A DNA stretch of 64,000 bases from Phallusia mammillata (taxonomy: Eukaryota), in assembly GCA_965637545.1 (NCBI GenBank), contig OZ281494.1:13764001-13828000 (forward strand), read 5' to 3'. Position 1 is the first letter of the stretch. Each line of letters begins with the position of its first letter. Shown here piece after piece: positions 3,301 through 25,171 of this stretch. The translations under genes and the position numbers were made by a program. Below the pieces are notes generated by a model that was not told where the DNA came from, did not search any database, and was given only the letters and a program-made list of their open reading frames with translations.

Positions 3301-6300
3301 AATTTACTACACCAGCTACATTCAAGGGTAGGCGTAATGCGTTCCAGCAACTTTTTCTGCAAAGGTCTGTTTGCACGGGCGAGCCACTAATCCCATATTA
3401 AGCCTTACAAATTCCTAAATCGCAGGTGTGGCTCACAACCTGTCGCTCAATGCCTCGTTTCAATTCAGCTGCTGCTCCTCCCGTCCGTCAACGCAAAACT
3501 TGATGTTAGCCGCTTCACCTGCAGTCAATAGGCCGATTTCAGAGCCCCTGGTTTATGATTTAGCTTCAGTCGGCCGCGACCCTATCGTGTACGAACTTAT
3601 CGTCGGTGCTAATTTCTCTGTCGCGGGATCGAGTCTTGCTTGTGTTTTCGTTCGCATGAGCGACGGCTGAGATTCTTGGCGCCCCTGTCCGTCTTGTAAC
3701 CCCAAACCTCGCCCCGTTGTGTTAGTTTGGCGAAAGTTCACTGGCAAATGCGCAAACGCTAAAATTAGAAAGCGACCCCTTATGTACCAGTACGCGTTCA
3801 TAAAAGGCGTGAAATTGGGCGATATTACCTTAGCACAACTTCTAGCTAAATATGGACTCTTCAAGGCCTTAAAATACATTTTCAATGTATGTTTTTCCAA
3901 ACCTGTCTACAAAATCCTTAAGAAACAACCAAACCTAATCTTCACACGAATTGCTTTTTACAGGGACCTCGCTGTCAGTGTCCTAATGGCCTGGAATTGG
4001 CTCCCGACATGCTCGGCTGCATCGTACCGGAAGCTTACTTGCTCTTCTCACTTCCGGCCGTCGGAAGCATCCGCGGAATTTCGCTCGACACAGCAGCAGG
4101 GGACTCTCCCATTCCGTTTACAACGTCAGTTGACGCCAACGCGCTGGATTTCTCGGTGGCCGACAACATGATATACTGGATCGACGTAACAAACAAGGTA
4201 TGATTGTGTTTAAATTACGTTTGATTTTTGTTGCGTCGTGGTTGGGCTAAACTTACCGCAGTGGTATATATCGTTATAGATCGGAGTTCTCAACTTTTTT
4301 GACGAAGGGCCTTAACGAAAGTTCTGCGGCCATTTTGATTTGATAATAATAACAGTACGCTAACCGTTCGTGGTTCAAAGGTTGGGATCCGGTTTTTAAT
4401 GACCATACATTCGCATCAATTTTTTTCTCGTGCCTGTTTGACCTCATCCGCCCCGCAGTCTCTAACTTGAAGACTCCGAATGTAGACCAATGCTCATTTA
4501 ACAAAAGCGACTTTTGAGAGTTGTTATACCTTGCGTACGTAGCGTTTGCGTTCACCGAAACAATGCGAAATATATGACAACAAGTTTCAAAATCTGTAAT
4601 TTGGATTGGTAAGAAGTTTTGCAAAGCAAAGCATTACGCAATTTGATTCAATTGTACCCGTAAGAAAGTCACACCAGGCGTTTGTCCAACAAAATGGACT
4701 ATAAAATTTACATTAGAAAATAACTTATTTCCAGTCCATACTCCACATACCGGTTGTAACAATTTTTAAAATGTCGCACAATAAAGCATTTCTCAAATCT
4801 TGCTTAACTTGCGTGAGCAGGTGGGTTTTGGTGTTGATGGCAAACGCAACCTCAAATATTTTCAACGACAACAAATTAACACGAGATTCTTGCGAGAACC
4901 CCAAACAGACATGTTTATTGCTTACGGGCAACGACCCACATACTGAGTACATGTTTTGGATTTACGGTCGTATTATTTATCGTTCATGTTTTCTGTACAC
5001 AGAGATGCTAGGGTCTTTGTTTACTCATCTGGGTTTGGGTTTAGGAGAAAAACACACGTTTTCCGTTTTCTATAAACGACTCTCTTTGTTCTTCTGGACT
5101 TATTTTTACTTGGTTACTTGGCAATCGAACTAAAATGAAACAGCTTTCCGAAATAATTTTGCAGCCACAAAAAAGTAGAAACGATTTATTGTCTAGTGCA
5201 GTGATCTGGTGTTTCGAGAAAGATCGTCTATTGTTCCTCAAGAAATTCGTTGGTTTGTCTTGTTCCATGGAACAGTTGTCAAAAATCACAAATATTAATG
5301 CATACTGTGTTCCGTGGCTTTTTTTAAAGATTAAACAACGCTGGCTTTAATGTTCACAACCTAAAAATCTTAGCACACCCCTTTTTAATGCAATGTTTTT
5401 TATTCCATCGTTTATCACTTTTCGGCTTATGTAAGTCAAAGTCGTCTGCAAACTCCTAGCAACCGACATTATCGAATGCCCAGAATCGCCCATAACCTCG
5501 GTATCTATAAAACACTCGCCTTTTCAGTCGCCCCGACAACCCACCGTTAGCCGTGAGATACACTTCAACTTTTCAACTCCCTTTATTTCTATCTTATGTC
5601 GACGATGTGGTCCAGACCCGCTGTGGACCACCCACGATACAGACGACTATATGGAGGTTTCGAGCTAATAGCTATATTTATAAGGGACCCGGTACAGACG
5701 GCGGTTAAAACATTGAACGTAAGATGTTACATTCACAAGGTCGTGGAGGAAAGCTATTTGCGGCAGCATTAGAGCCTTGCGTTTCGTTGAACGAGCCTTG
5801 CGTTTCGTTGAACGAGCCTTGCGTTTCGTGAAAATTAAGCTAATAACGGCATTTTTAGATTTCCTTTGAATATGGTGAATCTTGACCCTTCTTTCAAATC
5901 TCGAACCTTTTTTAAATTTATTTAAGCAATTGTGGTGCTGTCGTGTATCGACAATTGTAAAGCAAGAGTAAAATATTGGTAAAAATAACACTGTCATTAA
6001 TATAATCAAAACACAGGTAATTAAAAAACACGCTTCTTTTCTGATTCGGCAATTCGATTTTTCGGATAATCGTTTGTGCGTTTTCTGAAGCTTTATTTAG
6101 CAATACGAATTATAGTTTATACCGAAGTCCAGCTGGTACGCAAACTTACTGTTAACAGATCGTTTCAGGGGTGCGAAAAACTATCATGCCAGTATCCACT
6201 ACTTCCGTCATACACACCAACCCTAACCACACTTAACAATTGTGGTTGTAAGTACCACCAACACTGGCAGGCAATTACCAAACAACAAGTGGTTATTTAT

Positions 6301-9300
6301 CATCTTGCCTGTCTCCTGTTTCCGATCGCATTACACAAGTTTGCGCATTCGTTCTTCTACCGTAACGCCCCGAAAACTTGAAGGTTGCTTCTCGTTTGTC
6401 TTACTCGCAGGAATTCCAAAGTTGACAGGCGAAATCTCCCCGTTCCCGCGCATTTTAACTGCCTCGTTTGGTTTCGACGGCTTGTTGTCGGTTTATGAAT
6501 GCGCACTTGACGCCGCAAATGCATCGCACTTAGTGTATATGCCTGTGTACGCTCGTGAAAATTCCGAACTAAAAATCGCTTCAGTAAATTTGTGCGTTCT
6601 AAAAATATAGGCGGAAATCTTTGAAGTGAAAAATTAAAGAGCGTCTACTTTTCAGAATTTTAGTCGATAATATTTTCCTAATTTACTTTTTAAAGAAACT
6701 TTGAAGCTTTTTCTTTGTAAAACGCAAGGACTTGAGCTTAGCCAACTTTTTTGCCTTACATCCATAGCTTACTGCTGCGCTATCACGTTATATACCTAAA
6801 ACACAAACATTTGTAAATGGTACTTGTGATTATCCTTGAAGTTTTATAACGTAAGTTTGTTCTGCAGAAAATCTCGCGCGCCTACATGAACGGCTCTCAC
6901 GTGGAAGATTTCATCAGTGTTGGACTTGAATCCCTCGAAGGTTTGGCTGTTGACTGGATTGGACGCAACGTGTATTGGTCCGATGCTGCCACCAAGCGGA
7001 TCGAGGTGGCACGAATGGACGGTACCAGTAGGAGACCTATTATCTGGGAGAACTTGGACGACTTGCGCAGTTTGGCAGTGGACCCAAGTAACGGGTTAGT
7101 ACCAACTTATTGTCATTTCTTTCAAATTAGATCGCAAGATTTTAAGCGGCTTTCGCTATTGAAAGATGCCTTGCAGCCTGTGTCCACATTAGTACTATAC
7201 AGTCAAGGTTAGCAAATTAATTTGCATAATATATGTTAATATGTGAGTGTAAATACAGGGCCTGTGTTTTTCACCCAAATACTATAAAGCACCGACGTTT
7301 TAACTATTTTCCACAATTTTAAACCATTTCCTCATGTCTACACATTTCTTCCTTTGCCTAAGCATAGCATAAAATATTTCAAAAGGCGTTCAGTCTTTTT
7401 TCCACAGGTAAAACTCCCTGTTACAATTTACCCCACTCTTTAATTTTAACTTGTGTTTTTTTGTGCAGTTACATTTACTGGTCACAGTGGGGTCCTGACC
7501 CGTGTATAATGCGAGCCGAACTAGATGGTTCAAACCCGGTAGAAATCAATGAGAATCCGGTGGGTCGACCCAACTCACTCACCATCGATTATGCCGAACA
7601 GAGACTTTACTTCGTGGATCTTGAGATCAGAACAATCGTTTCAACCAACATGAATGGTCAGTTTCACGTTTTTACTTGCAATTAACCATAGTGTAAAATT
7701 TTAGTGTCCTTGTGACATGTTGATATTAGTTTTTGCTATCTTGAAAACTTTGTCCTTTTTTGTTTTTAATCCCTTACATTCCGAAAAATTTCAAGCGGTA
7801 GTTTCTGTTAAGACTTAGTTAAATTTACTACAAAAGTTGAAGTATCTGTGTTGATTTTTGCCACATTTACAATGAACATTTACTGCAAACAATTCAAGTT
7901 TTTACTCTATTTACATTTATGCAGTAACTGTAGACAGTTTTTCCACACTTAAACGTTGCAGTGATGGTCAAGTGGTGGCCCATAAAGATCGTTTGCATTA
8001 AGTTAACTCTTCTTTGTTTTCTTTTTTCTGAAACAGGTAGCGACCTTCGAGAAGTCGTTCGTGGCAAAAGCAACCAGACTTTCTTCAGTCTAACCTTATT
8101 TGGCGATTACATCTACTGGTCAGACAGCACCAAGAAGTCCATAGAGAGAGCCAACAAAATCACTGGCAACAACAGGTAAGCTTAAGTTGAAACAGTTTTA
8201 AGCTTTCGTGCATATTTTAGATCCAAATGTCTAGAATCAGTACTGTGTGTCTGTTTTGAAGATTGTATTTACCAGCTTGATGTTAAACATTAGTTTGTAT
8301 GAATACAGTCAACCTCGGTTAATCCGGACCCGTTTGGAACAAAAAAATTTCCGGGTTGGGCGAAGACCCGAATTAACCGATAGAAACTAGTTGAAGCGTC
8401 ATTTGTACCTGAAGTTTTGTCTAAATTAGGCGAAGATCCGGATAAACCGAATCCAGATTAACCGAGGTTTACTGTATTGCGTATCTAATGTCGCAGACTT
8501 TGCCCCTTGTAGATGTAAAAAAGGGAATATATTATTTTGTCGTATTTCTAAGCTACAATTTATTTGTGTTAAGACTGGCCGTACTGTCACATTAGTCTAA
8601 AATTGTTTTGCACCAATTTATTCTGCAAGTTGACTTTATTTTCACCATGCTTTTCTTTTACAGCCGTGTCATTGAGAAAGGTTTGAGTGACTTGGAAGAC
8701 ATGCTGGTGTACCATGCATCTCGTCAAAGCGGCGTTACAGCCTGCTCCCATCTCAACGGAGGTTGCCAACATCTGTGTCTGAGTTTACACGCCGGGCGAC
8801 ATAAGTGTTCCTGCCCTGCTCACTACACTCTCAACCCCGACAATGTTACTTGTGCTGGTACGTTGTTTTGAGTTTGTCCTTTATGAAACAGTAGTGACAT
8901 AAAATACGGTTAGAGTTATCACTTTTGAATGCGGTTAGTTGGCAAGGTGAAAACTGCCATAACTATGTCCCAAATTTCTGGTTATATTAGAAATTTTGAT
9001 ATATATGCCTGTCTTCACGTTATATTGACTTAATAATCGGTCAAGACTACATGACTACAAGCTTAGCCCATATGGGCATACAATTCTGCATACAAGATTA
9101 CATATCAGTGGAATGTTAGATTCTGTTTTCAAATTTCTTACGGAAACGGTCAAATTTACGTTGCATTATCTTGCAATGATGTAGGTTTCCATCTAACGTT
9201 TTTTTTGCTTTACAGCCCCGAAAAACTTTCTTCTTGTGAGTCGCAACAAATATATTACCCGCATCATCTTCGAGTCATCGAACGGTCAAGTTGGAGTTGT

Positions 9301-12300
9301 GCCCGGTGGCGTTATGGGCAACAGAGGCTCGTCAAAGAGACAACAGCCCCAACCAGTCACCATCAAACCTGGCCCTGACGCCGTGCTACCAATCAGAGGC
9401 ATAAAGGTAACTTACTTTACCTTACGTTACGTTACTTACCAGTTTTACGGTACCTCCTTTTTTATTTATTTTTTCACGGAGTTCCAAACTCGGACGTTTG
9501 ACGAATCGCGATCAAGTTTTTTATGTCTTTATATCAGTCAGGTGCCCTGGACCATTCGGCCAATTTTCTACCTACATAAAGGTTACTCCTAGCGCCTTAG
9601 GTGGTTGTCAAGTATCCATAGAATTCATCTAACTTTTTTTCCAAAGAGCAAATTATCTAGATGCTATGTTACAAAACTTGACCGAGTACCATTACTTAGT
9701 TACTTGTAGTTTCAAATCACAAGATGGACTATAAAGTAACGCTCTGAACTCAAACTCACATGCTCTTTTGGTGTAACTTTGTTTAACCGTTACAGGAGGC
9801 ATTTGCCATTGACTACGACCCGATTGATCAACGAGTTTATTGGTTAGATTACAAACTCGCTCAAATTTGGAGTTCTCGACCAAACGGAACAGATGTAAGT
9901 TGAAATATGCATCCAGCACAAGCGCCTGATGTTACCTTTTGTGTACGCTGTATTTATTTTATTTGTTCCTGTTTAGCGTCGAATTCTGTTGGATGGAAAT
10001 CGCACTGGCCACAAGCCCTACGACATAGCAGTGGATCCTTACAGCAGGGCAATGTACTGGACAGATGCGGCTAACAACACGGTATGTGTATATGTGTGAG
10101 AAGTTTGTTGTGCTTAACCATAGCCAGCGTACATTATTGAAACACACCTTGCAGTCTTTCAGTGGAAAAAGGCTGAATCTTACCAAAACCCAAATGTCCT
10201 TTTTCGTGGTTCCCACTTTTATGGGGTGAACTTTTATAGGGGTGGATGAACTGATGAACTAATTTAAACAGCACTTGTTGAATTTGTGGCACGAAGTATT
10301 GGTCTTTATTCAGTACAAATGCGGTTCGCTTTTTAATGCAAGGCGAACTTAAACCTTTTCAGATTAACTTGATCAAGTTGAACGGCACTGTGGTAGGAAC
10401 GGTACTGACTGGCCCGATTAAACCTGGTGTATCTGGTCGTTCATCATTTGAAGCTATGCCAAGAAAGTTGGCCGTCGATCCAATGAGAGGGTGAGTACTC
10501 AAAATACTGCAGAAGTAGCGAATTGCACGGCACAATTAAATTCAATTTCATTTAATTTTACGCAAATTTGGTGGCATGTATTTAAACCTAAACTATAAAT
10601 TTAAATAACCCTTTTTTCCGCCCAAACTTATTTTATTTTCCCCAAAAAATGTAAAATGTTGAGACGAGTGTCGATGTTGTTCTCTTTATTTGAGGGATTA
10701 ACCAAGAGTTTTTCCATCTTACAGTCGAATGTACTTTACCAACATTTGCCGGGACGTTAAGTCGTGTCGTCTCAAAATCGTGGTTGCCACAATCGACGGT
10801 TCAGATCCAATTGTTCTCATTCCACGCAGTTTGCGCAACGTCACTGCACTTGCGGTCGACAGCAAATCGAAACAGTGAGTTGAAATTTAAACTAAAACAT
10901 AAAAAATAACGGTATTTCGTATCTTACTCATGTTTCGAAGGCCATAAGCTTAACTTTGAATTTTTTGTATTCAGACTGTTTTGGGCGGATCGTAATATCA
11001 TTGAGAAGTCGACTCTAGATGGAAAGGAACGTACCGCGTTCATACAAACCGGTCTTCTTGCCCCAGTCGGTCTCACTGTGTTTGGCGAAAACCTGTACTG
11101 GGTCGACGCGGAGGTAAAATTTACTTTTAGTAGTGATGTAAACAATCTATTAGTACGAAATTTTCGTATTTGGTCCGAGTCTTATTTAGACCATTTGATG
11201 CATAACTACTTCACAGTATACGTTATGCACCCACAGTATAGCAGTTAGCGAATTGTTTTAGGCGTTTGAGATATACTCCTGGACACTTTACAGTAATACT
11301 TCCAGCATTTGCATTCAATGGTGTTTTTGTTGTTTAGTATATTGGCATCTATATACTTGCAGGCGAGTGGCGGTTTGATCGAAGGAGCCAACAAAATGGA
11401 TCGAAGCAACCGACACAAGATACAAGGCCGTGTCGACCACTTGCGTGACGTTGTCGCTGTTACGTCGATGACCCTGGATGACCTCAGTAGGGACCTTACT
11501 TGTTTTAATCCATACTGTTGTTGTATACTTGTTGTGTATGGTTCTCAACCTGGGACATCTAAGGAGTTTACGCGATAGGTTCGGGGGTCCGTAAATGTAA
11601 ACAATGATTTTTAAGTACCTATAAACAGGTTGAACTTATAGTAGGGGTCCGTTGCTTAAAAAATCTTTTGGAAACACTGTTTTTTGGAACGCATGTCAAT
11701 TGTGAATGCGCCGAATAAATTATAGGTTCCAAAAGTTAGGAATTCTGTCAAATAATGGATTCAGTCGGTAACCACTATGATATTAGGCCTAGGGTTCAAG
11801 AAGGGTATCATTATTCAGCTTACGTTCCAAACAACCTAACCTAACTGCTGGTTAACATAGGTTTCCTACTTAAACCGTATGTTTTTAAAAAGAGAGCAGC
11901 AATTTGAAAGTCGGTGTTTTGTTACAACAGATAAACATCCGTGTAAGACTGATAATGGAGGATGTTCGCATATTTGCTTGCCCAACGAAGACGGAACAAG
12001 TAAATGTCTTTGCCCAAACCATCTCACCAAGTCTGATGAGTTTGTTTGCAGTAAGTCATTGTTGTTTTGTGTTGATTAAATAAACAACTTGAAAGATCAA
12101 CACATAATAGTTACGGTTGCAGTCTAATATAATATGCTGTGTGCTCGTTCAAATGAGCACGTGTTTTATTTGGGTTCCAAACGTTTAAAATGTGTATTTG
12201 TACAGCGACACGCATACATTGCTGATGTTTAGTCCTAATCGAAAATCCCCAAAATAGTGCGGCCTATTTTATTGTTTCCTTGCAACGTCGAACACTTTTT

Positions 12301-15300
12301 TCTTGATTTAAATACATGAAATTCGGTTACGATAATATATTAACATTTGATTTTCGATGCACTGCAAAATATAAAACCTGCAGATTTATCTTTTTAAAAA
12401 TTAAACGTCAGCGTTTTTATGTTTTATTTAAAAAAAAACTTGTTTATTTTCAGTTGAACCACCAACTTGTCCTCCAAACCACTTTACGTGCAGTAGCCGA
12501 AACGGGTGTGTCCCGATCAACTGGCTTTGCGACGGTAAACCCGAATGCGACGATAAATCCGATGAGATGGACTGTCCACCTTGCGCGCCTGACCAGTTCC
12601 AGTGCGGGTCCATAGTGTCCACTGCTGACCACGCCGGCAACAACAAACTGCTACTTGACAAGCTGGTTGAAGCCGCTGGCAGTCAGTGTGTGCCGAAGGA
12701 CGCAAGGTGCAACGGTCAAATTGACTGCAGAGACAGCAGCGATGAAATTCATTGTGGTGAGTTGTAGAAAAGCAGGCAAATATCAATGTAAAAGCGTCAA
12801 GTCATCATAGCTCCAGGACTGATATCAGTATGAATATATTCAACTGCACTGATGAGACATTATAGGTCGAAACTGTGTACATAGTCTGCAGCTTAGGCAA
12901 ATTTCAAATTCTAAAAAAATCGTTTCCTTTTTGGCCTATTTTGAGGTTTTGTTTTTAATGGATTTTTCTGTATTAAAGATTGCCTTGAAAACGAGTTTGA
13001 GTGTGCATCGGGTGAATGTATTCCTCTATCGAAGAAATGCAACCAGAAGAAAGATTGCAGTGATGGATCCGACGAAATATGCTCATCTCAAGGTACTTAT
13101 CGCCGTTTTGTAATGCTGGAACGAGTTAAATACAGCACGATTGTTCCCTACCCTGAAAACGTTCTGCTAGTTCTTTTGATCACTAAGCTGCAGACAGTGT
13201 TACCTATCAATTAATTGCTCCATTCATAAAAAGAACAAAATACATTTTGGGGTAATTTACTTTTTTGCTGTTTTTCTCGAAACCCATTTTCTCTTTTTTG
13301 CGACTTTTTCTCTTACTTTCTTTTTCTTTTTTCTCTCTTTCCATCTGACTCAGCTCTTTGGCCTCTATTTCATGGAACTCAATACTTGGTTCAGAACCAG
13401 CAGCACAACAACCGTTCTACTCCACTAATCGGTACTTAAAAACAAAACGCTCTTTAGCGACCTCAACCGAGTATTAACAATGTCACGTGACTTTACCAGG
13501 TACCGCCCAGTCAGACCCTGACAACACGTATGTGATTGTGATCGGGATTTTCTGTGGATGTGTCTTACTCATCGGGATCGTTGTCTTCCTTCGTCATTGT
13601 ATGGTAAGTGAGAAACAGTCAGTACCTTGCACCTTTGCGCCGAACTTTCCAAATTGCCTAAAATGTCGATAGCAAAATTAGGGTGATGGATTGCTTGTGT
13701 TGGAGAGTTATGTATGAGCCTTAGTATATAATTTGCAATTTCATTGACAATAATCGCTTTTTTCAGCAGATTTGTATTGTAAAATAACTGACGCCTGGCA
13801 GCAACATCCTTTTATTGGGTATTTTTGTGCCCTTCTTAAAACTTATCTGCCTCAACATTTGAAGGAGTTGATTTTATAATATTTGAAGTCCAGCTTGACG
13901 AATAGAAAAACTCTCTCTATGTTTCATCATAAGTGATCAAAAGACTCCAGAATAACATATGGTCACTTCTACCTACGATTTTCTCATAAACAAAAGAAAC
14001 GCACAATGTTGTAAATACAGAACCTACTGTGTTTCGTGTACAGGCGCACAACAACTCTTCCTATTCGACTCCGGTGTTTCTGTGGTCACCGGGTAATCTC
14101 AACTCGAACCTCAACGTCAATCTCGAGTTCCAACAGCACGTGGATCCCGCGGACCCGGCGAGTCATCGCACAAGCGCGAGTGGCAACAGTGGAGACGCAG
14201 GCCACAAGAAAGCATCAAGCAACGGGCCTTCCCATTCAACTACATCATTTAACGTGTCTATTGTCCACCCCAGAGGCCGGTCTGCGGCCCATTCTAAAGG
14301 CATTCCGTTGCGTGTAATACACCCCGGAGTCAATTCGGCGTTGGCGGCTCCCTGGCCCGGTTATCCCTATGCTGTAAGAGGCAACGAAACTGTGGTAGTG
14401 GATAGACCTGGAATCCCCGGCGCGTCGAGCAGTTCAAGCTCCAAAACGGTGGTGAATTGCTTTCCGGAGGTAAGACTTTTGCTTCTCTGGATCTACGTAC
14501 AGTTATATCTAGTGTTTTCACTGTGGGTCTTGAAAGGGTTTCAATCAGACTCATTCATTTTAATAGCAAGAGTCCCCTTTGTTTGTTCGTATGGTTCATA
14601 TTGTAATATTTTACCACTTACCGCTGATTTGTTCCCACGTTTTTGTCAAAAGAGTGGTTATGACTTAAAATTTTGGCACATAACGAGTAAACATCAATGC
14701 ACTCTACTCTTAACTTTTGTATGTCGATATGCGGCTGTCCACAAACTATTGTCCTGTGCAAGAAATTCCACCTTGACATATGCAAGGCCGTTTATCTTTG
14801 TGCCCCGGTGTATAAACTGTTGCTTTTTTCCAGACCTGGAACCCACCACCCTCCCCCGCAACAGACAGGTCTGAAGGAAAGAGTGGTGAGTGTTATTACC
14901 CTGAAGCTCCTCTACCACGCCCTCCCTACCACCACAAGTGCAGGAGCAGTCGAGGACACAGGTAACTTTTGCTATGTTCTTGATGTATGTAATGCAACAT
15001 TTAATTCGATAATACGAAATGCATTGATTTGTACTGATTAAGGTTTGGTTCGGTTTTATGTTGCATGGCTGACAAGGGTTTGAAAAAAATACGATTCGTA
15101 ACGTTTTGTGCACCAGGTTATAATTATTGTTAGAAAACTTGAACGGCGCGCGCACAAAGGTTAACGAGAACTGAACATCATTACAGACGCCAACACCATC
15201 GGAATACTGGACCACCGCCACCAACACCTTGTACCACTGAAGACAACTGCGACGACGCTGAAGTCTGCAGCAAATCACGCGCGTATGTCAACACAAGCAA

Positions 15301-16060
15301 ACGTGGGGCTGCAGGAAGTCGTTCTGGTGGTAGCAGCGGCGGTAGCGTTCCCCATGATCCACCGCCACCCTATTTCCGCCATCACCACCATCAGTGCTGC
15401 TATCATTGCCCGCAACACTACAGCGGTCACCAGCAGAGAGGATGCCACCACTTCTCGCCTGCTTACCACCATTCGCGCTGTGACGGTATGGAAAACTCGT
15501 CAAGCTCGTCGTCGCGTTGCCAATCATGCGACTGCCAAAACTCAGATACGGCTGACTGTTCGTGTACTGAGGCATCGCAGCCGTCCTGTCCTCCTTCCTA
15601 CCACGGCAGGCAGCGATCCAGTAGGAGGCGCTCGGCGCGCAAATACACGAGCGATTTGAATTACGATTCGGATCCGTTTGCGCCGCCGCCCACCCCACAC
15701 AGTCAGTATTTGTCCGAGTGCTGCTATACGCATGGTGAAACGACAGAGGCCGACGAACCCTTGGAGGACGACATCCCTGAGCAGGCCAATCGGGAAGTGG
15801 AAGAGATCACATCTCGGATAGACGAAGGGTCGGAATCAGATAGACTGCTTGAAGGCGCTGCGGAGCCAGACTTTTTTGATCCTAACGAGTTGGATGAAAT
15901 TGAAGAGGAGGACGAGGAAGGAAGAACAACGGATGATGCAGACACAGTTTTGCTCGCTCCCAGACAAGGTGGGGATGTTTCCGCCCGGACGTCCCCATCC
16001 ATTACGGAGCGGAGCTTTTTTGCTCGTAACCCCCCACCATCTCCAGTGTCATCTTCCTAA
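368..16060 (+). CDS. LRP5/6: LRP5/6 (Arrow) Wnt co-receptor, 5'-truncated by the window; end of YWTD propeller 2, propellers 3-4 with EGF modules, 3 LDLa repeats, TM, PPP(S/T)P tail
   Basis: Phase-consistent GT-AG exons: 368-503, 1489-1699, 3964-4197, 6868-7094, 7469-7656, 8037-8175, 8664-8857, 9216-9406, 9796-9894, 9977-10081, 10363-10490, 10725-10874, 10975-11113, 11363-11486, 11931-12050, 12454-12756, 12979-13092, 13500-13603, 14044-14469, 14834-14961, 15187-16060 (TAA). Motifs: [96 protein letters not shown], terminal [10 protein letters not shown]. Confidence 0.96.
841..1304. mobile_element. Non-autonomous hAT-type MITE in an LRP5/6 intron
   Basis: TIRs TAGAGATGTACCGAAT / ATTCGGTACATCACTA (1 mismatch). 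Perfect 8-bp TSD GTTATGAC at 833-840 and 1305-1312. Subterminal clusters of TTCGGCCGAA-like motifs at both ends. Confidence 0.93.
5607..5634. promoter_or_regulatory. Candidate GLI/Zic binding-site cluster in an LRP5/6 intron
   Basis: CCCGCTGTG (5617-5625, ZicL-type site) directly abuts GACCACCCA (5626-5634, canonical GLI consensus), inside an inverted repeat GTGGTCCA...TGGACCAC. Motif match only. Confidence 0.3.
5772..5829. repeat. 21-bp tandem repeat (GAGCCTTGCGTTTCGTTGAAC x ~2.8)
   Basis: Two exact units at 5772-5792 and 5793-5813, plus a partial third at 5814-5829. Confidence 0.9.
8306..8474. mobile_element. Tc1/mariner-pogo (Tigger-like) MITE
   Basis: TIRs CAGTCAACCTCGGTTAATC / GATTAACCGAGGTTTACTG, with TA on both flanks (TA TSD). 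Confidence 0.88.
11537..11679. mobile_element. Degenerate Charlie-like hAT MITE remnant
   Basis: Left end ATGGTTCTCAACCTGGG, right end GGAAACACTG, internal GGGGTCCG motifs. No recognisable TSD. Confidence 0.4.
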
Positions 16061-18112: not shown

Positions 18113-18521
18113 GCTTACAACAACAGAAGTTGATCATCACGCTACATCTCCAATAGCCACAATTTTGGATGCAATGCAAATCACAAGTATTTTCCAGATA
18201 CAATAAATAAAAGTTAATGTATTGTAAGACTTGTACTTTGTTGTCATGGGATTACATTTTTCTGAAACAAATATTATTTGCTAAGATAAAAAAAATCTGC
18301 CATTGTAAATAAATAATTACATGTCAGGACTGAGAAATTCCTTTTTTCACACAAGAGTTCAGTAAACCTATTATTATAAGTACCCTGCTTGTTACGTTTT
18401 GTAAATTGTCGTACTTTGCTACATCTTGTTAAGCTTTTCCCAAATCAGCGTTTGTCCGAATTCATTTCGCACCCTGGGTTATTTTGTCATGGTTCGTGAG
18501 CATAACGGCTCGAAATCGCAA

Positions 18522-18667
18522 CAGGGGTTGTGACTTTTTCGTGACACTTGTCACTGTTAGTGACAGGCGTCAATGACAGGGCTGGGGTGTCACTAAATCG
18601 GTGACAGGGCGCCACTAAATCAGTGACAGGGCAAAAACAGTGACACGGCAAAATCGGTGACAGGGCG
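18522..18667. repeat. Left GTGACAGGG-motif block with outward TIR-like end (CAGGGGTTGTGAC)
   Basis: Several GTGACA(G/C)GG units with 22-bp periodicity (CACTAAATCAGTGACAGGGCGC). The first ~55 bp align by eye with the reverse complement of 24800-24858. Confidence 0.7.
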
Positions 18668-20232
18668 TTCTTGCGTTCTTCTTGCGATAGTATGAACACA
18701 AGCGAATTTATTAGGTCTTTGCTTGTAAGGGTTTTCTTTAAAAATTGCAAGCAGCAAAGGTTTTAAATCTAAATTTCGTGCAAAAATGTACCTCATGACT
18801 TTTTGGTATAATCTTTAAATTCTGCAAGCAGCAAAGGTAAGTGTGTTTTTGAACTTTCATTGCCTGCCAGGCAGTCTGATGAGCTCTAACAGGGCGAAAA
18901 AGTTCAATCAATTTGTTTTAAGTAGTTTTTTTTTATTATGTAAACATGTCTAACCTCTGTTTTGTGCCACATTGTCATATCTGAATATTTAACAATATGT
19001 AATGTTATGTGCAAAAAGAGGAGATTATCTGAGTTTCCAAACAAAAAAACGTTTTGTACACATGAAGATCAACACGTTTAAAGCTGCTCAAAAAAATAGT
19101 GCATCTAGAATTTCCTAGCTTCAGGACAATGTTACAAGTGGTAATGTCTTTTTACCCATTTAAACTGATTCTGCCATATTTACACAAAAAATTGTTGATG
19201 TTTTTTGTTTTATTTTTTTTTGCAGACAGCCACAAACATTTAACGATTGGAAACCCAAGATTTAAAGATAACCAAGATTAACACAAGTATTTGGTTGTTG
19301 TTATTGGTGTTTGAGGTGTTGTATTTAATTGCACCTTTGAATTGTGTGCACATATTTGTAATTGTCAATGTCTACTTGGAGATTTAAGTTTATACATTAT
19401 ATAACCAGAGATTTTAAAAAATACTGTGTTTCGACAAAATAAAGAAAAAAACAACTGCAAATGAATCACCATGTTTCGAGTTTGTTAAAAGGGGTTAAAT
19501 GGCTAAAAAACAAAATTAAGTTTAATATGGTTCATTATTTTAAAGTTATTTTGTGGCCAACTTAGCCAATTATATTCGCTCTGTGCGATAAATTTCTAAG
19601 TGTGTTTAAATTGGTATGGATGTTTTATGTGTTTGTTAGGTTAGGAATTCCATAGGTTCTGTAATTTAAATAGCTTGTTACCTGGTAAACAATCAAATTC
19701 ATTGAGTTCGCAAATTTCATTTGGAAACATGGGCAGGAAGAGTCCAGAAGCTTTGATGAAAGCTGACCAGAAGCAGAAACGCTCTACTGATCTTTCACAT
19801 GTATGTGTTCGAGCAATCAATAATTGTAGTTCTGTAGTGAATAATGTATTATTGATTCAATAATTCTTGTGTATAACAGTATTTTACTTTAAAATCTCTT
19901 ATTTGTTGAAATATTTTCAAGTCCGAGTCAGAAAATGCTCTTTTTGTTCATTCTACAAAAACGTTTTTATTACACACAGTGATTTGTTACCAAATGTGTT
20001 ATTTCAGGATGGTGTATCAGCAAGCAAGTCAATATCTTACAAGATGCACGTGTTTTAGACTCTCCACAGAGTATGAGGTGTGTTGAAGGTTTAAATGGTT
20101 CAGTAAATTTAAAGTCCATTTTTCAATGGTTTTACTAGCTCTGCTGTAAAATATTGTCATGTGATGAGTTTTATCAAAATCCTAAATTTAACTATAAGCA
20201 TGCACTAATGGGTTGTGCAAATTTTGTTTTAG

Positions 20233-22400
20233 TTAAGCATTTGCAATTGCAAGCACATACTGCGCATGACTATTGGTGAACGTCATTCAGTTGTCAACCC
20301 ACAAAGATGGCTCTGCAACACTTGCCTTACAACTGAGTCTGTTTGGACATGTCTAAGCTACCCTAATGTTGCTTGTGGAAGGTAGGAACCATGGTCAAAA
20401 CACAAAACAAAATGTTCTACAGTCTATAAAAATGAATAAATAATGTGTGGACTGTTTTGGATGACCATTTGAATATTTATAAAATGGTATATAACCTACA
20501 GATATATCCATGAACATGCATTAAACCAGTGGTTCCTAACCTTTTTGGTGTGGTTTCCCATTAAAGTAAATCACCAAGTTCGAATTTCCCCCTCTGTTAT
20601 TTTTATAATAATGTTTTGTGCCCAACATTAACAAAAAATTATTCTTTAATCAAAAAAATTTTGTGAAGTGATTTTGTCGGGACCTTAAAGGTATACTGCA
20701 ATCTTATTTATATGTCATGTACTTGCAATAGTCATTTATCGCATCACAATCAACAGACCAAATGCATTTATTCGCGAACAATAACAAAGTCATTGATACT
20801 TTTAGTAATGTCTGTGACGTAACAAACGATTGTTGGATTTTTATGCGCCTTGCAAAACTAGGTGAAGTTAATCTTACATGTTGTTGCGGAAAATATTGTA
20901 TTAAATTAACTTTCAACGGTTAATTTAATAAAAAAAGCCCAAGTTTGGTGACTTCTAACTCACATAATTTCCCTCTAAAAACATTAAATTTCCCACTAGT
21001 GGGAAATTTCCCACCGGTTAAGAACCACTGCATTAAACCATTATTTGGAATCTGGTCATCCATTAGTGATTGATGTCAATGAACTCTATGTATATTGCTA
21101 TGCTTGTAAAGAATATGTTCTCAATGACAACAAATCGGGGAACATCAAGGTGCTACGTGAAACTTTACAGGTAGGCAAATTTGCGTTATTATCTTTTTTA
21201 AATTGTAGTTGTGTCAGTCCAAACAATTCTGTGGCATGGTTTCTTGGTCGGAAATTGCCTGGAAAATAATTTATGTTGTATCATGTGACAAAAAGTATTA
21301 GCCCATAAATTTTGTTTGTAAAATTTCAATAATATTAAGTTAAACAATTTAGGCTGCTTTTGTGCAGTAGGTAAAATTTGAACAGTTTATGTATTGTGTG
21401 CCATAGTAAATATTAAAACTTCAATCAGAAATTCTTAACATTTCTCCAGGCAATTAGATACCAAAACTTTACTGGCACAACTCGTAGTGGACACACACAC
21501 TGAGGACAGCCACAATAAGTGCAGATGAAGATGTTCAAATGAGGAGAAGATTACAGCAGCAACAACTTGATAGAGATGATACACTTTTCACTGCCATTTG
21601 GCATTCAAGGTACTTTTTCACACCGTAAAAGTGCACAAAATTGTGTTACTCCAAAAATTCGATGCCCAAATTTGCCAATTTTCATAAGATTACATAATTT
21701 TAGTTTTTTTTGTCTTTACTATGTAGGTTTGTTTGACAAAGAAAAACCTTCAGAAACTGGCAGAACTATGTTCGTAACAAGGACCAACACTGTCAGAGTG
21801 ATGACGAACAACCATGTGCTACAGTCACACTACAGTGAAACACAGAACTACAAGAAGACTTCATTGGAAAACTCGATGACCACCTTGAAACCTTGTCAGA
21901 ATTAAAGATCTGCAACAAGTTAATGCTGATTTTCCATTAAACACAGAAAGGAAGGGGATTGATACAAGGTTAATAAGGGAAATTACACTTGATCCTGTTT
22001 AAGGTGTTTTACCAGCATTATCTGTTGTGTGGCAGTGCAAGGTCTGATTATGTGGAAAAAATCAATACTGGTGTCTTATTTCAGTAAAACACCATCTCCA
22101 GACTGTTCTGTATTTACTCTATCCAAATTGAATACCACATTTCATTTTTTTAGGTGCTCGGTCATTTGCAAAAGTTCCGCCGATGTTTACTTGCCGTTTG
22201 TGACATCGAAATGGATGAAACCACTGGGTGCTACGAAGATCCACAAGTTTCGCCATCAAGCAAGTTATGAGTCGCTGGAGGAAGGTCCACCATAGAAATA
22301 AGAGCCATGGCATTTTAGCAGGCTAGTCTTTTGCCAGAAACAATCTATTCGAGCAACTGCTTGTATACAGAAAATACTTACATCTCATGACAACTCAGGT
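20233..22400 (+). pseudogene. USP44/49: Decayed, intron-containing USP44/USP49-like deubiquitinase copy (ZnF-UBP plus start of the catalytic domain)
   Basis: Exons 20233-20381 (CKHILRMTIGERHSVVNPQRWLCNTCLTTESVWTCLSYPNVACGR), 20502-21170 (YIHEHALN[MITE]HYLESGHPLVIDVNELYVYCYACKEYVLNDN), 21450-21609 (AIRYQNFTGTTRSG...FTAIWHSR), 21727+ (V*QRKTFRNW) and ~22152+ (VLGHLQKFRRCLL). Lesions: MITE inside an exon, +2 CA slippage at 21491-21500, in-frame TGA at 21734-21736, no Cys-box exon found. Confidence 0.9.
20527..21030. mobile_element. hAT MITE (family A, copy 1) inserted in a USP44/49 coding exon
   Basis: TIR CAGTGGTTCCTAACC / GGTTAAGAACCACTG. Perfect TSD CATTAAAC (20519-20526, 21031-21038). Removing the element plus one TSD restores the frame E-H-A-L-N-H-Y-L-E-S. 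Confidence 0.95.
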
Positions 22401-23082
22401 TTACTTGTAGTAGGGATTTGACTTGAGGACTCAAGTCTAAATCAATGACATTTCTTAGAAATAAGGAAAATAAACTTTTTAAAGACCTTGCCTTTCAAAA
22501 TAAGGTCAAGTCTTCGAAATAAGAATAGGATGGCGACCCTGAGTATAAGATATACAATATAATTAAGGCAAGTTTAAATCGTTTTATGTAAACAAGGCAC
22601 TAAACTTTACCAGTTTTAGTTCAATTCCACACAGACTATTAAGATTTTACTTATAGCCTCACTCGGGTTGGTAGTGTACCTCACACTGTGCTTCATGGAC
22701 AAAGCGCCTCATGGCGATATCCCTGACATATAACTTCTCAATATGGCTGTAGACTAGCCTGCTAAAATGCCATGGCTCTTATAAAGGCAAAGCTTTGTTT
22801 CATTTGGTATGAAAATGTATTGGTAAGACCATTAAATATTTTCTAGTCTTGGCAATGTCCTGTTTGCTTATAAATTGTGATGTTATGGATGTGTGTATTG
22901 GTTTATTCTATTTGTTGTTTTCTTAACTGAAGTCTGTCCACGCCAGATGGTAGATATGGTCATGTAAATGTGCCATAACAGCTCCAGTATTTAACCCACT
23001 AGCAGCCCAAGTTATAAACCTTTCTTATAATCCGACACACTCCGGGCTGGTTGCTTTGGCAGTTTTGACAGCCTGAAACAAT

Positions 23083-23355
23083 GGGTGGTACTAAATACTG
23101 CATGTTACCGTATGTTATTCTGCTTAAAATACTGCATGGTATGTGAAATGCGAGAATACAAGCCCCAACAAGGGAAAATTAGACCAGATTATAGCATTGT
23201 TTTAATTACAAACCTTCACCCAACCAGAATAGCTCTAACCGTTAGCGCTTTCAAAAGTTCGCAAAACTATATTTTCGTAAAGGCATATTCAAGTCCTTTA
23301 CAACTTCCTGCCATGTTATAACATGCGGTATACCATGCGGTATTTAGTACCACCG
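23083..23355. mobile_element. MITE with 8-bp TSD, superfamily unassigned
   Basis: TIR GGGTGGTACTAAATAC / GTATTTAGTACCACCG. TSD GAAACAAT at 23075-23082 and 23356-23363. Subterminal CATGCGGTA-like repeats. Confidence 0.85.
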
Positions 23356-23749
23356 GAAACAATCGCCTATCGGCGTTACAATTTAAAAGTGTTGATTGGG
23401 TGATTGTGGTTTGATTTTTTATTATTTTGCACGTAGCATCCCCCCTAAGATGGGTATTTTTTTTTGAATTTTAAGTGTCAATTGCATTGTTACAGGAGAG
23501 TATTAATCTATATACTGAAAGCTAGAGAATATCGTGTGCTTGCTTAGCTTTTTAAGTTCTTTATCACACCTTGTCTTCACTTTAAGCATTCATAAATTCG
23601 TTGTTTTTTGTTCAGTAATAAAAGCTGTCTGAAATAGTTTGTCATGCTTTAGAATTACTGTAAAAGTTTTTGTACCAACACCAATATTTTTGGAAAACTC
23701 AAAACAAAAGCTAGTTAAAACAAACAAAAGAGTCATTTAACACAGTAAG

Positions 23750-24560
23750 TCACTGCTGTAGTCCGGGGACCCCTGGGGCAATTTCTCCCATCTATCTTGA
23801 TTCTTTGCTAGTCTGTTGTATTCCATGATCTATTTTCCTGTCCACCCCTGAACATTGCCAAAGCCAGTTCGTTCTGGGCCTGCCTTGTCTTCTTATTCCC
23901 TCGTCGGTCCTGTGCATGATGGTGATGTAAGAGTTCTATGGCGACATGTTACATGGCTAACCCATTAAAGCTATGTTAAACAAGATTGGCAACAGTATGC
24001 ACTCTTGAAATACTCCAAAGTCTTAAACTATTTTAGTGCACTTCCATTGGTTAACACAGCATTGATGACCTTTATATTATACAGTGATTTGATCAGGAGG
24101 ATCAGGAAGAGACTGATCCTATGTTTCTTCATGGTGCTCCACAGGGCCTCTGTGACTAAGTTCTTGATGGTGGTCTCTTTTTTTCACCTAGTATTCAATC
24201 TGTTAGACCAGTGGTTCACAAGACTGTAGACTGTACCATCATGTCCTTCCCTTGTTTGTTCTTCAGATAAGACACTCTTGATTTGAGGTATTAGTTTACC
24301 TTTTTTGGTATCATGACTATCAAATATTGTGTCCACGTGGGCCACACTTATCTCATATGTATTCAAGATCTCCTGTGTTATCCAGCAAGGCTTGTTTCTG
24401 GTTCCAGTTTTCATCACAGTCGCATTCATGATTTTAGAGAACTCAGATGTTAATTCTTGAACATTATTTTCCAACAGTGCATCAAATCTGCTTTCAATCT
24501 TTATTTCAAACCCCTTTCTGCAACCTGGCTCTTCAAACGACAAAGGAAAAATACTCTTTT
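23750..24560 (-). mobile_element. Degraded, internally deleted RTE-clade LINE fragment
   Basis: Minus-strand peptides FEIKIESRFDALLE...RNKPCWITQEILN (EN-RT linker-like) and TIMHRTDEGIRRQGRPRTNWL (resembles the RTE ORF C-terminal GKRRRGRPRTRW motif). Stops and frameshifts present; ends approximate. Confidence 0.65.
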
Positions 24561-24573
24561 TAAACAAAAATAT

Positions 24574-24858
24574 AAATCAGTGACAGGGCGTCAGTGAATC
24601 AGTGACAGGGTGTCAGTAAATCTGTGACAGGGTGTCAAAATCAGTGACAGGGCGTCAGTGAATCAGTGACAGGGCGTCAGTGAATCAGTGACAGGGCGTC
24701 AGTGAATCAGTGACAGGGTGTCAGTAAATCTGTGACAGGGTGTCAGTAAATTTGTGACAGGGTGTCAGTAAATTTGTGACAGGGTGTCAGTAAATCTGTG
24801 ACAGGGTGTCATTGACAGGCGATAGGTGACAGCCTGTCACTGAATTGCCACAACCCCG
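24574..24858. repeat. 22-bp tandem array (~11 units of AATC(A/T)GTGACAGGG(C/T)GTCAGT(G/A)) ending in a TIR-like GCCACAACCCCG
   Basis: Tandem units directly visible at 24574-24811 in two sub-variants, followed by the palindrome GTGACAGCCTGTCAC and an end related to 18522. Confidence 0.92.
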
Positions 24859-25171
24859 CCTCCGAAATCGCGCCTGATTTCGTGACATGAAAAAGGCTAA
24901 AAACTGTACAGCAAGTGGCTTCCGCACAAGGCAGTTTATTCAGCTAACAGCTTATGTTATTAAAAGTGCTCAACTGATCAAAGGTACGTTGTGTTCAGTC
25001 TATAAAAAGTTGCTTACCAGCACCCTTAATACTTCACAGCTACTAGTGATTTTATTAAAAGACAGTTGTTTTACACTTTTTACTAGGGCAACTTTGGTTG
25101 CAGCAGTCACTCGATCTTTCCGTGTTTGTGGTGTATAAACAGCAACAACACAATCTACCTACTTTGGAAGC

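Follow-up and report, generated by a model that had tools for sequence, protein, structure and literature searches.

Evidence for a young, multicopy Pack-TIR transposon family with a multi-exon USP44/49-type cargo in Phallusia mammillata

Cut-and-paste transposons that capture pieces of genes are well documented in plants, and they seem to be rare and feeble in animals. We analyzed a stretch of 64,000 nucleotides of the Phallusia mammillata genome (GenBank assembly GCA_965637545.1, contig OZ281494.1, positions 13,764,001 to 13,828,000, forward strand; hereafter, the window), in which a 6.3-kb element holds part of a USP44/49-type gene. Positions given without a contig name are those of the window. 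The closest described systems are the Pack-TIR or Pack-TYPE elements (TIR, terminal inverted repeat), namely the Pack-MULEs and Pack-CACTA elements of plants, the animal Pack-TIRs and Ssk-FB4 of Drosophila. In the only broad survey, which covered 100 animal genomes, 370 Pack-TIRs with a median cargo of 224 bp were found (Tan et al. 2021, PMC8277862). They were mostly hAT or Tc/mariner elements, no Pack-MULE was among them, and 4 of the 370 were multicopy, one example having three copies. In the main text of that paper, the name 'Ciona' does not occur and tunicates do not appear.

Like these systems, the element in the window is a non-autonomous TIR element with target-site duplications. It contains an intron-bearing piece of a cellular gene, has been amplified by transposition and is transcribed as a chimera. 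It differs from the surveyed animal Pack-TIRs in its cargo of about 3 kb with seven exons, its roughly 25 copies, the hammerhead motif in its first intron and a source gene that appears not to be resident. The element is larger and more prolific than these Pack-TIRs, yet of the same kind. The Heli1Xen1 Helitrons of Xenopus offer a second comparison. They were horizontally transferred, and their captured pieces came from genome-resident genes (PMC12001565). They are likewise young, polymorphic and expressed, and their non-autonomous members carry mostly 5′ gene fragments in up to 17 copies. However, Helitrons have neither TIRs nor target-site duplications and move by a rolling circle; the analogy is one of behaviour, not of mechanism. 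A large, multi-exon, apparently polymorphic and spliced element with about 25 copies in a relative of the chordates is a natural system in which the capture of gene pieces and their subsequent fate can be followed.

We conclude, with a probability of roughly 0.9, that positions 18519-24862 are a very recent insertion belonging to a young family of Pack-TIRs, non-autonomous cut-and-paste elements with a USP44/49 cargo (Table 1). We searched the window's own genome (240 Mb) with each end of the element and with its 5.88-kb interior. The two ends were paired, about 6.3 kb apart and in the same relative orientation, at no fewer than 21 sites, which fall on seven of the eight large contigs (C1, C2 and C4-C8). 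At 16 or more sites the whole interior was 98-100% identical, including the USP-like exons, the small inverted-repeat elements and a piece resembling a long interspersed nuclear element (LINE). The family counts about 25 copies, of which at least 21 are full length. When 20 copies were aligned over 3.5 kb, their divergence was 0.8% on average and 1.5% at most. The flanks of the copies are unique sequence. The terminal pattern GGGGTTGTGRC-N6-GTGACA had 118 matches in the genome, compared with 0-1 for the reversed control; its recurrence is not due to chance. Duplications of 8 bp, different at every site, were found as 15 exact pairs by script and 3 more by eye, one of which agrees at 7 of the 8 positions.

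The initial annotation had proposed, from the sequence of the window, a DNA-mediated capture of the Pack type. The shared ends, the 8-bp duplications of each copy, the retained introns and the presence of a full gene elsewhere bear this out. However, the capture did not take place at this locus: the family had already been amplified when one of its copies inserted in the window. The annotation had also named an alternative, in which a USP44/49 copy, native or segmentally duplicated, happens to lie between two partial repeat blocks of independent origin. Such an origin would accommodate the direct orientation of both subterminal arrays and the lack of inversion in the outermost 5 nt. The census of copies, together with their target-site duplications, rules it out: a 6.3-kb unit with exact 8-bp duplications stands at 21 or more unrelated sites, its flanks are unique, and an empty-site contig exists in another individual (see below). 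We consider it scarcely credible. The case named as fatal to a capture, a USP44/49 gene in its ancestral position, is excluded by the multicopy nature of the element, its own duplications and the full gene on contig C4.

The termini of the element were set by aligning the junctions of about 30 left ends and about 25 right ends. The element begins with CAACAGGGGTTGTGAC at 18519 and ends with GCCACAACCCCGCCTC at 24862, and its left terminus is inverted relative to the right one. The outer ends had been matched by eye as inverted, and arms of 40 nt with 70% complementarity were indeed found at 18507-18546 and 24835-24874. The outermost 5 nt are not inverted copies of each other (CAACA versus GAGGC), and the symmetry begins at GGGGTTGTG. 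The duplication CGAAATCG is exact and abuts both termini directly. The initial annotation had placed a 9-bp CGAAATCGC outside both ends at an offset of 2-4 bp. That sequence is present at both places, whereas its length and offset were not upheld, the duplication being the 8-bp CGAAATCG; the offset arose because the termini first proposed lay 3-4 bp too far inward. The palindromes GTGACACTTGTCAC and GTGACAGCCTGTCAC are perfect and of one kind with the units of the subterminal arrays, each 22-bp unit being the near-palindrome TGACAnnnTGTCA. As had been noted, both ends carry a common unit in direct orientation: GTGACAGGG units occur at 18591-18666 and at 24573-24811. In many other copies, the left array has one additional 22-bp unit. 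These units are probably transposase-binding repeats.

The duplicated 8 bp are A-rich in the orientation of the element, with G at position 8 in 11 of 15 sites. Thus, the element shows an asymmetric target preference. The target in the window with the element taken out reads CGAAATCGCGCCTGATTTCG (18507-18518 plus 24863-24886), which is an imperfect palindrome with the arms CGAAATC and GATTTCG.

An 8036-nt contig bears on the empty site that the initial annotation had suggested looking for. It comes from the Logan contigs of X4, a DNA run of another sample. This contig matches the left flank (18200-18519); 0.5 kb or more of what follows, and probably 7.2 kb, is sequence other than that of the element. 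Its depth is 36, that of single-copy sequence, compared with 215-800 for the element. The match ends 1 base past the duplication, and this base is common to the right flank, as an empty site predicts. An empty-site-like contig was thus found in another individual, and the insertion in the window appears to be polymorphic, the join between left and right flank being deduced.

The surroundings of the insertion and the arrangement of neighbouring copies were also recorded. The last coding exon of the upstream gene (15488-16060) ends about 2.4 kb before the insertion; by eye, it encodes an LRP5/6-type tail with PPPSP-like motifs. No depth of RNA-type contigs was found at 18200-18399. Therefore, the element lies in apparently untranscribed intergenic DNA. 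Elsewhere in the genome, three pairs of full copies in opposite orientation stand 0.1-8 kb apart: on C5 (17335207-17341527, plus; 17344869-17351198, minus), on C4 (10303391-10309700, plus; 10317684-10324041, minus) and on C6 (15523773-15529992, minus; 15530071-15536243, plus). In the C5 and C4 pairs, the copies have separate target-site duplications. The close pairs suggest local hopping, and the C6 case suggests insertion into the left array of another copy. In X12, a DNA run labelled as another organism, pieces of the element about 99% identical were present at a depth of about 5, and the unique flank of the window was not covered. Contamination or a mixed sample could explain these pieces, as could a further host of the family.

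The terminal sequences are shared with relatives that hold no cargo: elements of 4.2-4.7 kb, derivatives of 0.30-0.37 kb and a 3.7-kb tandem unit. The 4.2-4.7-kb elements form an older family of about 7 copies that are 91.5-99.7% alike, and this family was examined on both sides of its middle (about 1.1 kb). The left 0.78 kb of the element in the window (18518-19294) is common to it at 75-91% identity by BLAST segment and the right 1.4 kb (23483-24866) at 70-86%, and nothing between these two parts is shared. Aligned as whole stretches, the common backbone parts are 67-77% identical between the families. The backbone has thus diverged by 23-33% from the resident 4.2-kb family, and no intermediates were found. 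In the parts of the 4.2-kb family examined, LINE-like remnants alone were seen; an open reading frame (ORF) resembling GNAT flanks the element and lies outside it. In the LINE-like remnants of the element in the window, Pfam detected no reverse transcriptase domain, the LINE assignment being a resemblance by eye. Since these remnants lie in the right part that is common to the 4.2-kb family, they were not gained after the capture. They belong to the older backbone, and the earlier proposal that the cargo later acquired a LINE has to be given up.

The genome search with both ends also recovered the uninterrupted short element that the initial annotation had predicted. Two derivatives, L052 and L054, measure 301 and about 367 bp; each is complete with the two ends and the two arrays and is flanked by a duplication of its own. 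The same ends with other interiors, which had likewise been proposed as a target of the search, occur in the cargo-less family, the short derivatives and the 3.7-kb tandem array. The view that the cargo had split a single tandem-array element gives way to derivation from a backbone of about 4.2 kb. A third family is represented in the census of the TIR pattern by about 15 single ends with the variant terminus GGGGTTGTGACATTTTTGGGACA. A truncated relative without about 0.6 kb at its left forms head-to-tail tandem arrays with a 3.72-kb period (loci L058-L060), with at least 24 units on C3 (19562525-19651187) and 9 on C40 (597-30345). This array is a transposon-derived satellite.

The cargo (19298-22299) comprises about 3 kb of a USP44/49-type gene and is homologous to C4:23006211-23010294, with 72-95% identity by segment. 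The coding exons are 87-95% identical to those of the C4 gene (89% for the 5′ segment of exon 2) and the introns 72-91%. Homology to the backbone stops at 19291-19294 and homology to the C4 gene starts at 19298, within 4 bp. At the other side, the C4 homology ends at 22299, the left edge of the second of two miniature inverted-repeat transposable elements (MITE2). Between the two cargo blocks, 1.35 kb of the C4 gene is missing, including the exon that matches UCH positions 1-45 with the catalytic Cys box (C4:23006794-23006931). More UCH exons lie on the same strand down to C4:23002246; exons on C4 below 23007550 were located by their matches. Since zf-UBP exons and downstream UCH exons stand together on C4, the gene there is a complete zf-UBP+UCH gene, and the cargo corresponds to its front part with an internal gap. 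As it lacks the UCH 1-45 exon and stops short of the remaining ones, the cargo cannot code for an active deubiquitinase.

The zf-UBP domain of the cargo (Pfam PF02148) is split over exons 4 and 5. Among PDB structures, the peptide of exon 5 is closest to the zf-UBP of USP49 (9yc2, E 8e-19), followed by HDAC6 (2e-8); a protein atlas search returned only 'zf-UBP'. Together with the introns that align to the C4 gene, these matches agree with the initial description of an intron-containing USP44/49 fragment. The search for UCH domains also gave many identical, intron-less multicopy frames, for example at C2:3043823, C2:3158375, C2:3286219 and C2:3343224 (559 aa), and about 10 further sites with 636-aa frames. 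These are transposon-borne USP-type proteases unrelated to the cargo.

The initial annotation had expected an intact parental locus. A complete gene does exist at C4:23.00 Mb, and it was first read as the direct parent of the cargo; the codon analysis led us to reject this reading. A comparison of the majority sequence of the cargo with the C4 gene over 205 codons gave 35.5 synonymous and 9.5 non-synonymous differences (dS 0.35, dN 0.02, omega 0.057). In contrast, the variants within the family comprise 27 non-synonymous (3 of them nonsense) and 7 synonymous changes, which is the neutral ratio (487 versus 128 sites). The two ratios differ with a P of 4e-7 in Fisher's exact test. Neutral decay from the C4 gene predicts at least 65% non-synonymous differences (binomial P 4e-9). 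Exons were searched singly, and exon strings were pooled solely in the scripts that count differences.

An ordinary Pack-TIR history, in which the resident C4 gene gave rise to the cargo and neutral decay in the transposon followed, has in its favour that the C4 gene is the sole non-transposon homologue in the assembly and is complete, with introns that align at 72-91%. However, about 85 non-synonymous differences would be expected over the 487 sites, compared with the 9.5 seen. Furthermore, the copies coalesce at 1.5% or less, whereas the cargo introns are 9-28% from the C4 gene. Contradicted by Fisher's test, this history would hold only if the codon alignments were wrong, and we regard it as very improbable.

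The contrast between the two ratios indicates that the captured gene was functional and had diverged from the C4 gene. It was therefore foreign, or has been lost from this genome. The cargo lineage was constrained during almost the whole time since it parted from the C4 gene, and the capture probably took place shortly before the burst of the family. A genome search found no gene closer to the cargo than the C4 gene in this assembly. We favour, with some reserve, a capture in another lineage, after which horizontal transfer or introgression brought the element here; alternatively, the source may be a paralogue that was lost or was not assembled. Three orthologues from other assemblies, with 72-82% exon DNA identity, served as outgroups. 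In exons 4-6, all three amino-acid differences were derived on the cargo side, and two of the three are still polymorphic among the copies. As 16 synonymous changes are derived there too, the outgroups support purifying selection on the cargo branch. The cargo records the coding sequence of a gene missing from this genome; if the element passed from one species to another, the cargo would tag the donor lineage. Without such a transfer, the transposon would instead be one that keeps a ubiquitin-binding domain for its own benefit.

X14 and X15, two RNA-like runs from separate studies, were compared with the DNA runs X4 and X12. Seven GT..AG splice joints were present in the X14/X15 contigs, and none was present in the DNA runs. 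The depth of the introns was depleted in X14/X15 (for example, 0.6 versus 121). Since exon 1 and the acceptor of exon 2 come from the backbone, the transcript is a chimera of transposon and gene. These data show that the spliced transcript starts in the backbone and then uses the captured gene's own splice sites. One RNA contig joins 20381 to 20502-20516 and then to 21029, without the first of the two MITEs (MITE1). Thus, MITE-less copies are among those expressed. Exon 8 was tried as the start of the UCH domain, and this was rejected, as no Pfam domain was found in it.

Relative to the C4 gene and an outgroup, exon 3 has a 2-nt deletion, which is common to all 20 copies. Therefore, the frame from the ATG of exon 2 is broken. 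Just upstream of the deletion, an ATG at 20009 (ACG in the C4 gene) restores the frame and opens about 215 codons through the zf-UBP exons to the TGA of exon 7 in all copies. In the copy of the window, a 2-bp insertion at 21491-21492 shifts the frame of exon 6; it was found in 4 of the 20 copies and is missing from all four sequencing runs. An extra TGA at 21734 (CGA to TGA) is present in the window copy and three others. The longest ORF of the element is 127 aa. With MITE1 in exon 5, the frameshift of exon 6 and two in-frame stops, the cargo of the window copy would be dead.

These results bear on a further explanation, an old capture from the C4 gene after which the truncated zf-UBP frame was kept by purifying selection as an accessory protein, for example a decoy of USP44/49. 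USP44/49 removes ubiquitin from histone H2B. An omega of 0.057 between cargo and resident gene, the open frame of about 215 codons that all copies share and that the new ATG restores, and correct splicing of the transcribed cargo are all consistent with such selection. The divergence of the backbone from the 4.2-kb family (23-33%) is, moreover, comparable to that of the cargo introns from the C4 gene (9-28%). However, MITE1 lies inside exon 5 in the most successful subfamily (17 of 20 copies), and a subfamily of four copies with the frameshift and the extra stop still transposed. Within the family, variants follow the neutral ratio (27 non-synonymous to 7 synonymous), and no cargo-bearing copies of intermediate age were found in the assembly. 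The loss of the exon-2 frame and of the catalytic exon resembles ordinary decay. Thus, we judge this explanation unlikely. If it were true, the protein could be a decoy of USP44/49 or a binder of ubiquitin tails that aids expression or movement of the element, and the conserved hammerhead would tune its output.

No transposase domain was found in the element: among the ORFs tested, Pfam found only zf-UBP. Thus, the element is non-autonomous. Its exact 8-bp duplication is most in keeping with hAT elements and less so with P, Merlin and some Mutator elements. Like the non-autonomous members of hAT, it combines this duplication with terminal repeats that are short and imperfect and with many short subterminal repeats, and it seems to hop locally, with copy pairs 3-8 kb apart.

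Several points weigh against our interpretation of the insertion or against parts of it. In contrast to hAT elements, the tips CAACA and GAGGC (GAGAC in the old family) lack the motif YARNG, and the targets, A-rich with G at position 8, lack the consensus nTnnnnAn, having T at position 2 in 2 of 15 sites and A at position 7 in 4 of 15. An autonomous partner was not found; the census of the TIR pattern gave non-autonomous groups and the single ends of the third family. None of the 150 hAT transposases (PF05699) scored out of 522 candidates lies within tens of kb of a family end. Nor did any candidate for P (PF12017, 14 hits), MULE (PF10551, 35) or Merlin (PF12762, 31) fall near the approximately 60 mapped ends; these candidates were all scored, and a degenerate or unassembled partner could escape. 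The X4 contig was matched to the left flank, and its continuation into the right flank (24871 onward) is inferred. X14 and X15 are only guessed to be RNA, and their contigs, pooled over all copies, do not resolve the start, the strand or the expressing copies. Selection on a protein borne by the transposon could likewise account for the new ATG and the restored frame. The branch of the cargo seems longer than that of the resident gene, with 16 polarised synonymous changes in exons 4-6 on the cargo side versus 7 on the resident side (P 0.09). Finally, the foreign origin rests on absence from one assembly, and donor searches found no donor: metagenome contigs did not contain the terminal pattern, no relatives of a backbone ORF were found, and the exon-5 ORF matched the three distant orthologues only (72-82% DNA identity).

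Since no scored transposase candidate of these superfamilies stands near the family ends, the mechanism is deduced from the anatomy of the element. A transposase encoded in trans would bind the GTGACAnnnTGTCAC palindromes and the 22-bp subterminal repeats, cut at the conserved tips and insert the element with an 8-bp stagger. About 3 kb of a USP44/49-type gene was placed into the older backbone, and it would have come from a functional gene already diverged from the C4 gene (dS about 0.35). The burst of the family would have followed shortly after the capture, and the window holds one insertion of the family so amplified.

Table 1. Positions of the element and its parts in the window
Feature	Position	Strand	Evidence and remarks
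Whole non-autonomous transposon	18519-24862	+	6344 bp; paired ends and shared interior at many sites
Target-site duplication, left copy	18511-18518	.	8 bp, CGAAATCG; same as 24863-24870
Target-site duplication, right copy	24863-24870	.	8 bp, CGAAATCG
Left terminus	18519-18554	+	CAACA tip; GGGGTTGTGAC core; palindrome GTGACACTTGTCAC at 18541-18554; start invariant in about 30 copies
Right terminus	24826-24862	+	Palindrome GTGACAGCCTGTCAC at 24826-24840; GCCACAACCCC core; GCCTC tip; endpoint invariant in about 25 copies
Left subterminal array	18591-18666	+	About 4 units of 17-22 bp containing GTGACAGGG; Tandem Repeats Finder and repeat families
Right subterminal array	24573-24811	+	11 units of 22 bp (TAAATCAGTGACAGGGTGTCAG); Tandem Repeats Finder score 359, 92% matches
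Right backbone	23483-24572	+	70-86% identity to L056, L057 and L058; LINE-like ORF remnants on the minus strand, about 23792-24567
Exon 1, backbone	18556-18836	+	Extends from 18556 at least; donor CAAAG/GTAAGT at 18836/18837; X14/X15 contigs cover 18556-18802 and join 18836-19226
Intron 1	18837-19225	+	Contains the hammerhead motif
Type III hammerhead motif, intron 1	18851-18905	+	Rfam RF00008, 36 bits, E 6e-5; CUGAUGAG and CGAAA cores
Exon 2, chimera	19226-19800	+	Backbone to about 19294; from 19298 region of the first USP coding exon; ATG at 19729; splice joints
Exon 3	20008-20077	+	2-nt deletion; ATG at 20009; splice joints and alignments
Exon 4, first zf-UBP half	20233-20381	+	...WLCNTCLTTESVWTCLS.PNVACG; PF02148; splice joints
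Exon 5, second zf-UBP half	20502-21170	+	Interrupted by MITE1; PF02148
Exon 6	21450-21609	+	Splice joints; frameshifting 2-bp insertion 21491-21492 in the window copy
Exon 7, chimera	21727-21968	+	Spans internal deletion junction at about 21911-21914; family-wide TGA after ...ATVTLQ
Exon 8, start	22154-22327	+	Joint 21968-22154, then unspliced rightward; contiguous RNA-type contigs 22300-24199 and beyond
Cargo block 1	19298-21911	+	C4:23010294-23008109 (minus); 5′ exon, zf-UBP exons, linker exons, introns; 87% and 78% DNA identity
Cargo block 2	21914-22299	+	C4:23006757-23006211; 83-85% identity
MITE1, hAT-like	20527-21030	.	504 bp; TIR CAGTGGTTCC; duplication CATTAAAC at 20519-20526 and 21031-21038; in exon 5
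MITE2	22298-22782	.	39-nt inverted arms, 92% complementary; X4 depth far above the element baseline
Third small inverted-repeat element	23084-23354	.	24-nt arms

The hammerhead motif of intron 1 lies 14 nt downstream of the 5′ splice site of exon 1, which is a perfect one. Its score is under the Rfam gathering score of 48.5; the two cores align, as do the three helices. The block of about 100 nt that holds the donor and the motif (18812-18905) is nearly invariant between families whose backbones are otherwise about 70% alike. The changes within the hammerhead between families convert a G-C to a G-U pair or fall on the tolerated core position 7. The near-invariance of this block argues for a function, and splicing and the predicted self-cleavage of intron 1 would compete. 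The hammerheads of Penelope-like elements and retrozymes and those of introns resemble it in their type III core and in their location, in a multicopy repeat family or in an intron. It differs from them in that it stands in the first intron of a DNA transposon transcript and scores below the gathering threshold.

MITE1 is missing from 3 of the 20 copies (L076, L078 and L080, which look older) and from the C4 gene, and a stand-alone copy was found at C3:3245641. MITE1 therefore entered partway through the history of the family. The initial annotation had both MITEs arriving after the capture; it is corrected in that MITE1 lies inside an exon and was gained during the history of the family. Since its contig depth in X4 is about 5,000-14,000, compared with 36 for the single-copy flank, MITE1 belongs to a very abundant family. 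In RNA-type contigs of both runs, an internal skip of 399 bp (20604 to 21004) was observed within it. Unrelated copies of the third inverted-repeat element occur in the flanks of L025 and L028 with 82-84% identity. At 22944-22976, many contigs of all runs start or end at these two points, and the depth peaks at 10,833 in X4. This is a short, highly repeated segment embedded between MITE2 and the third inverted-repeat element.

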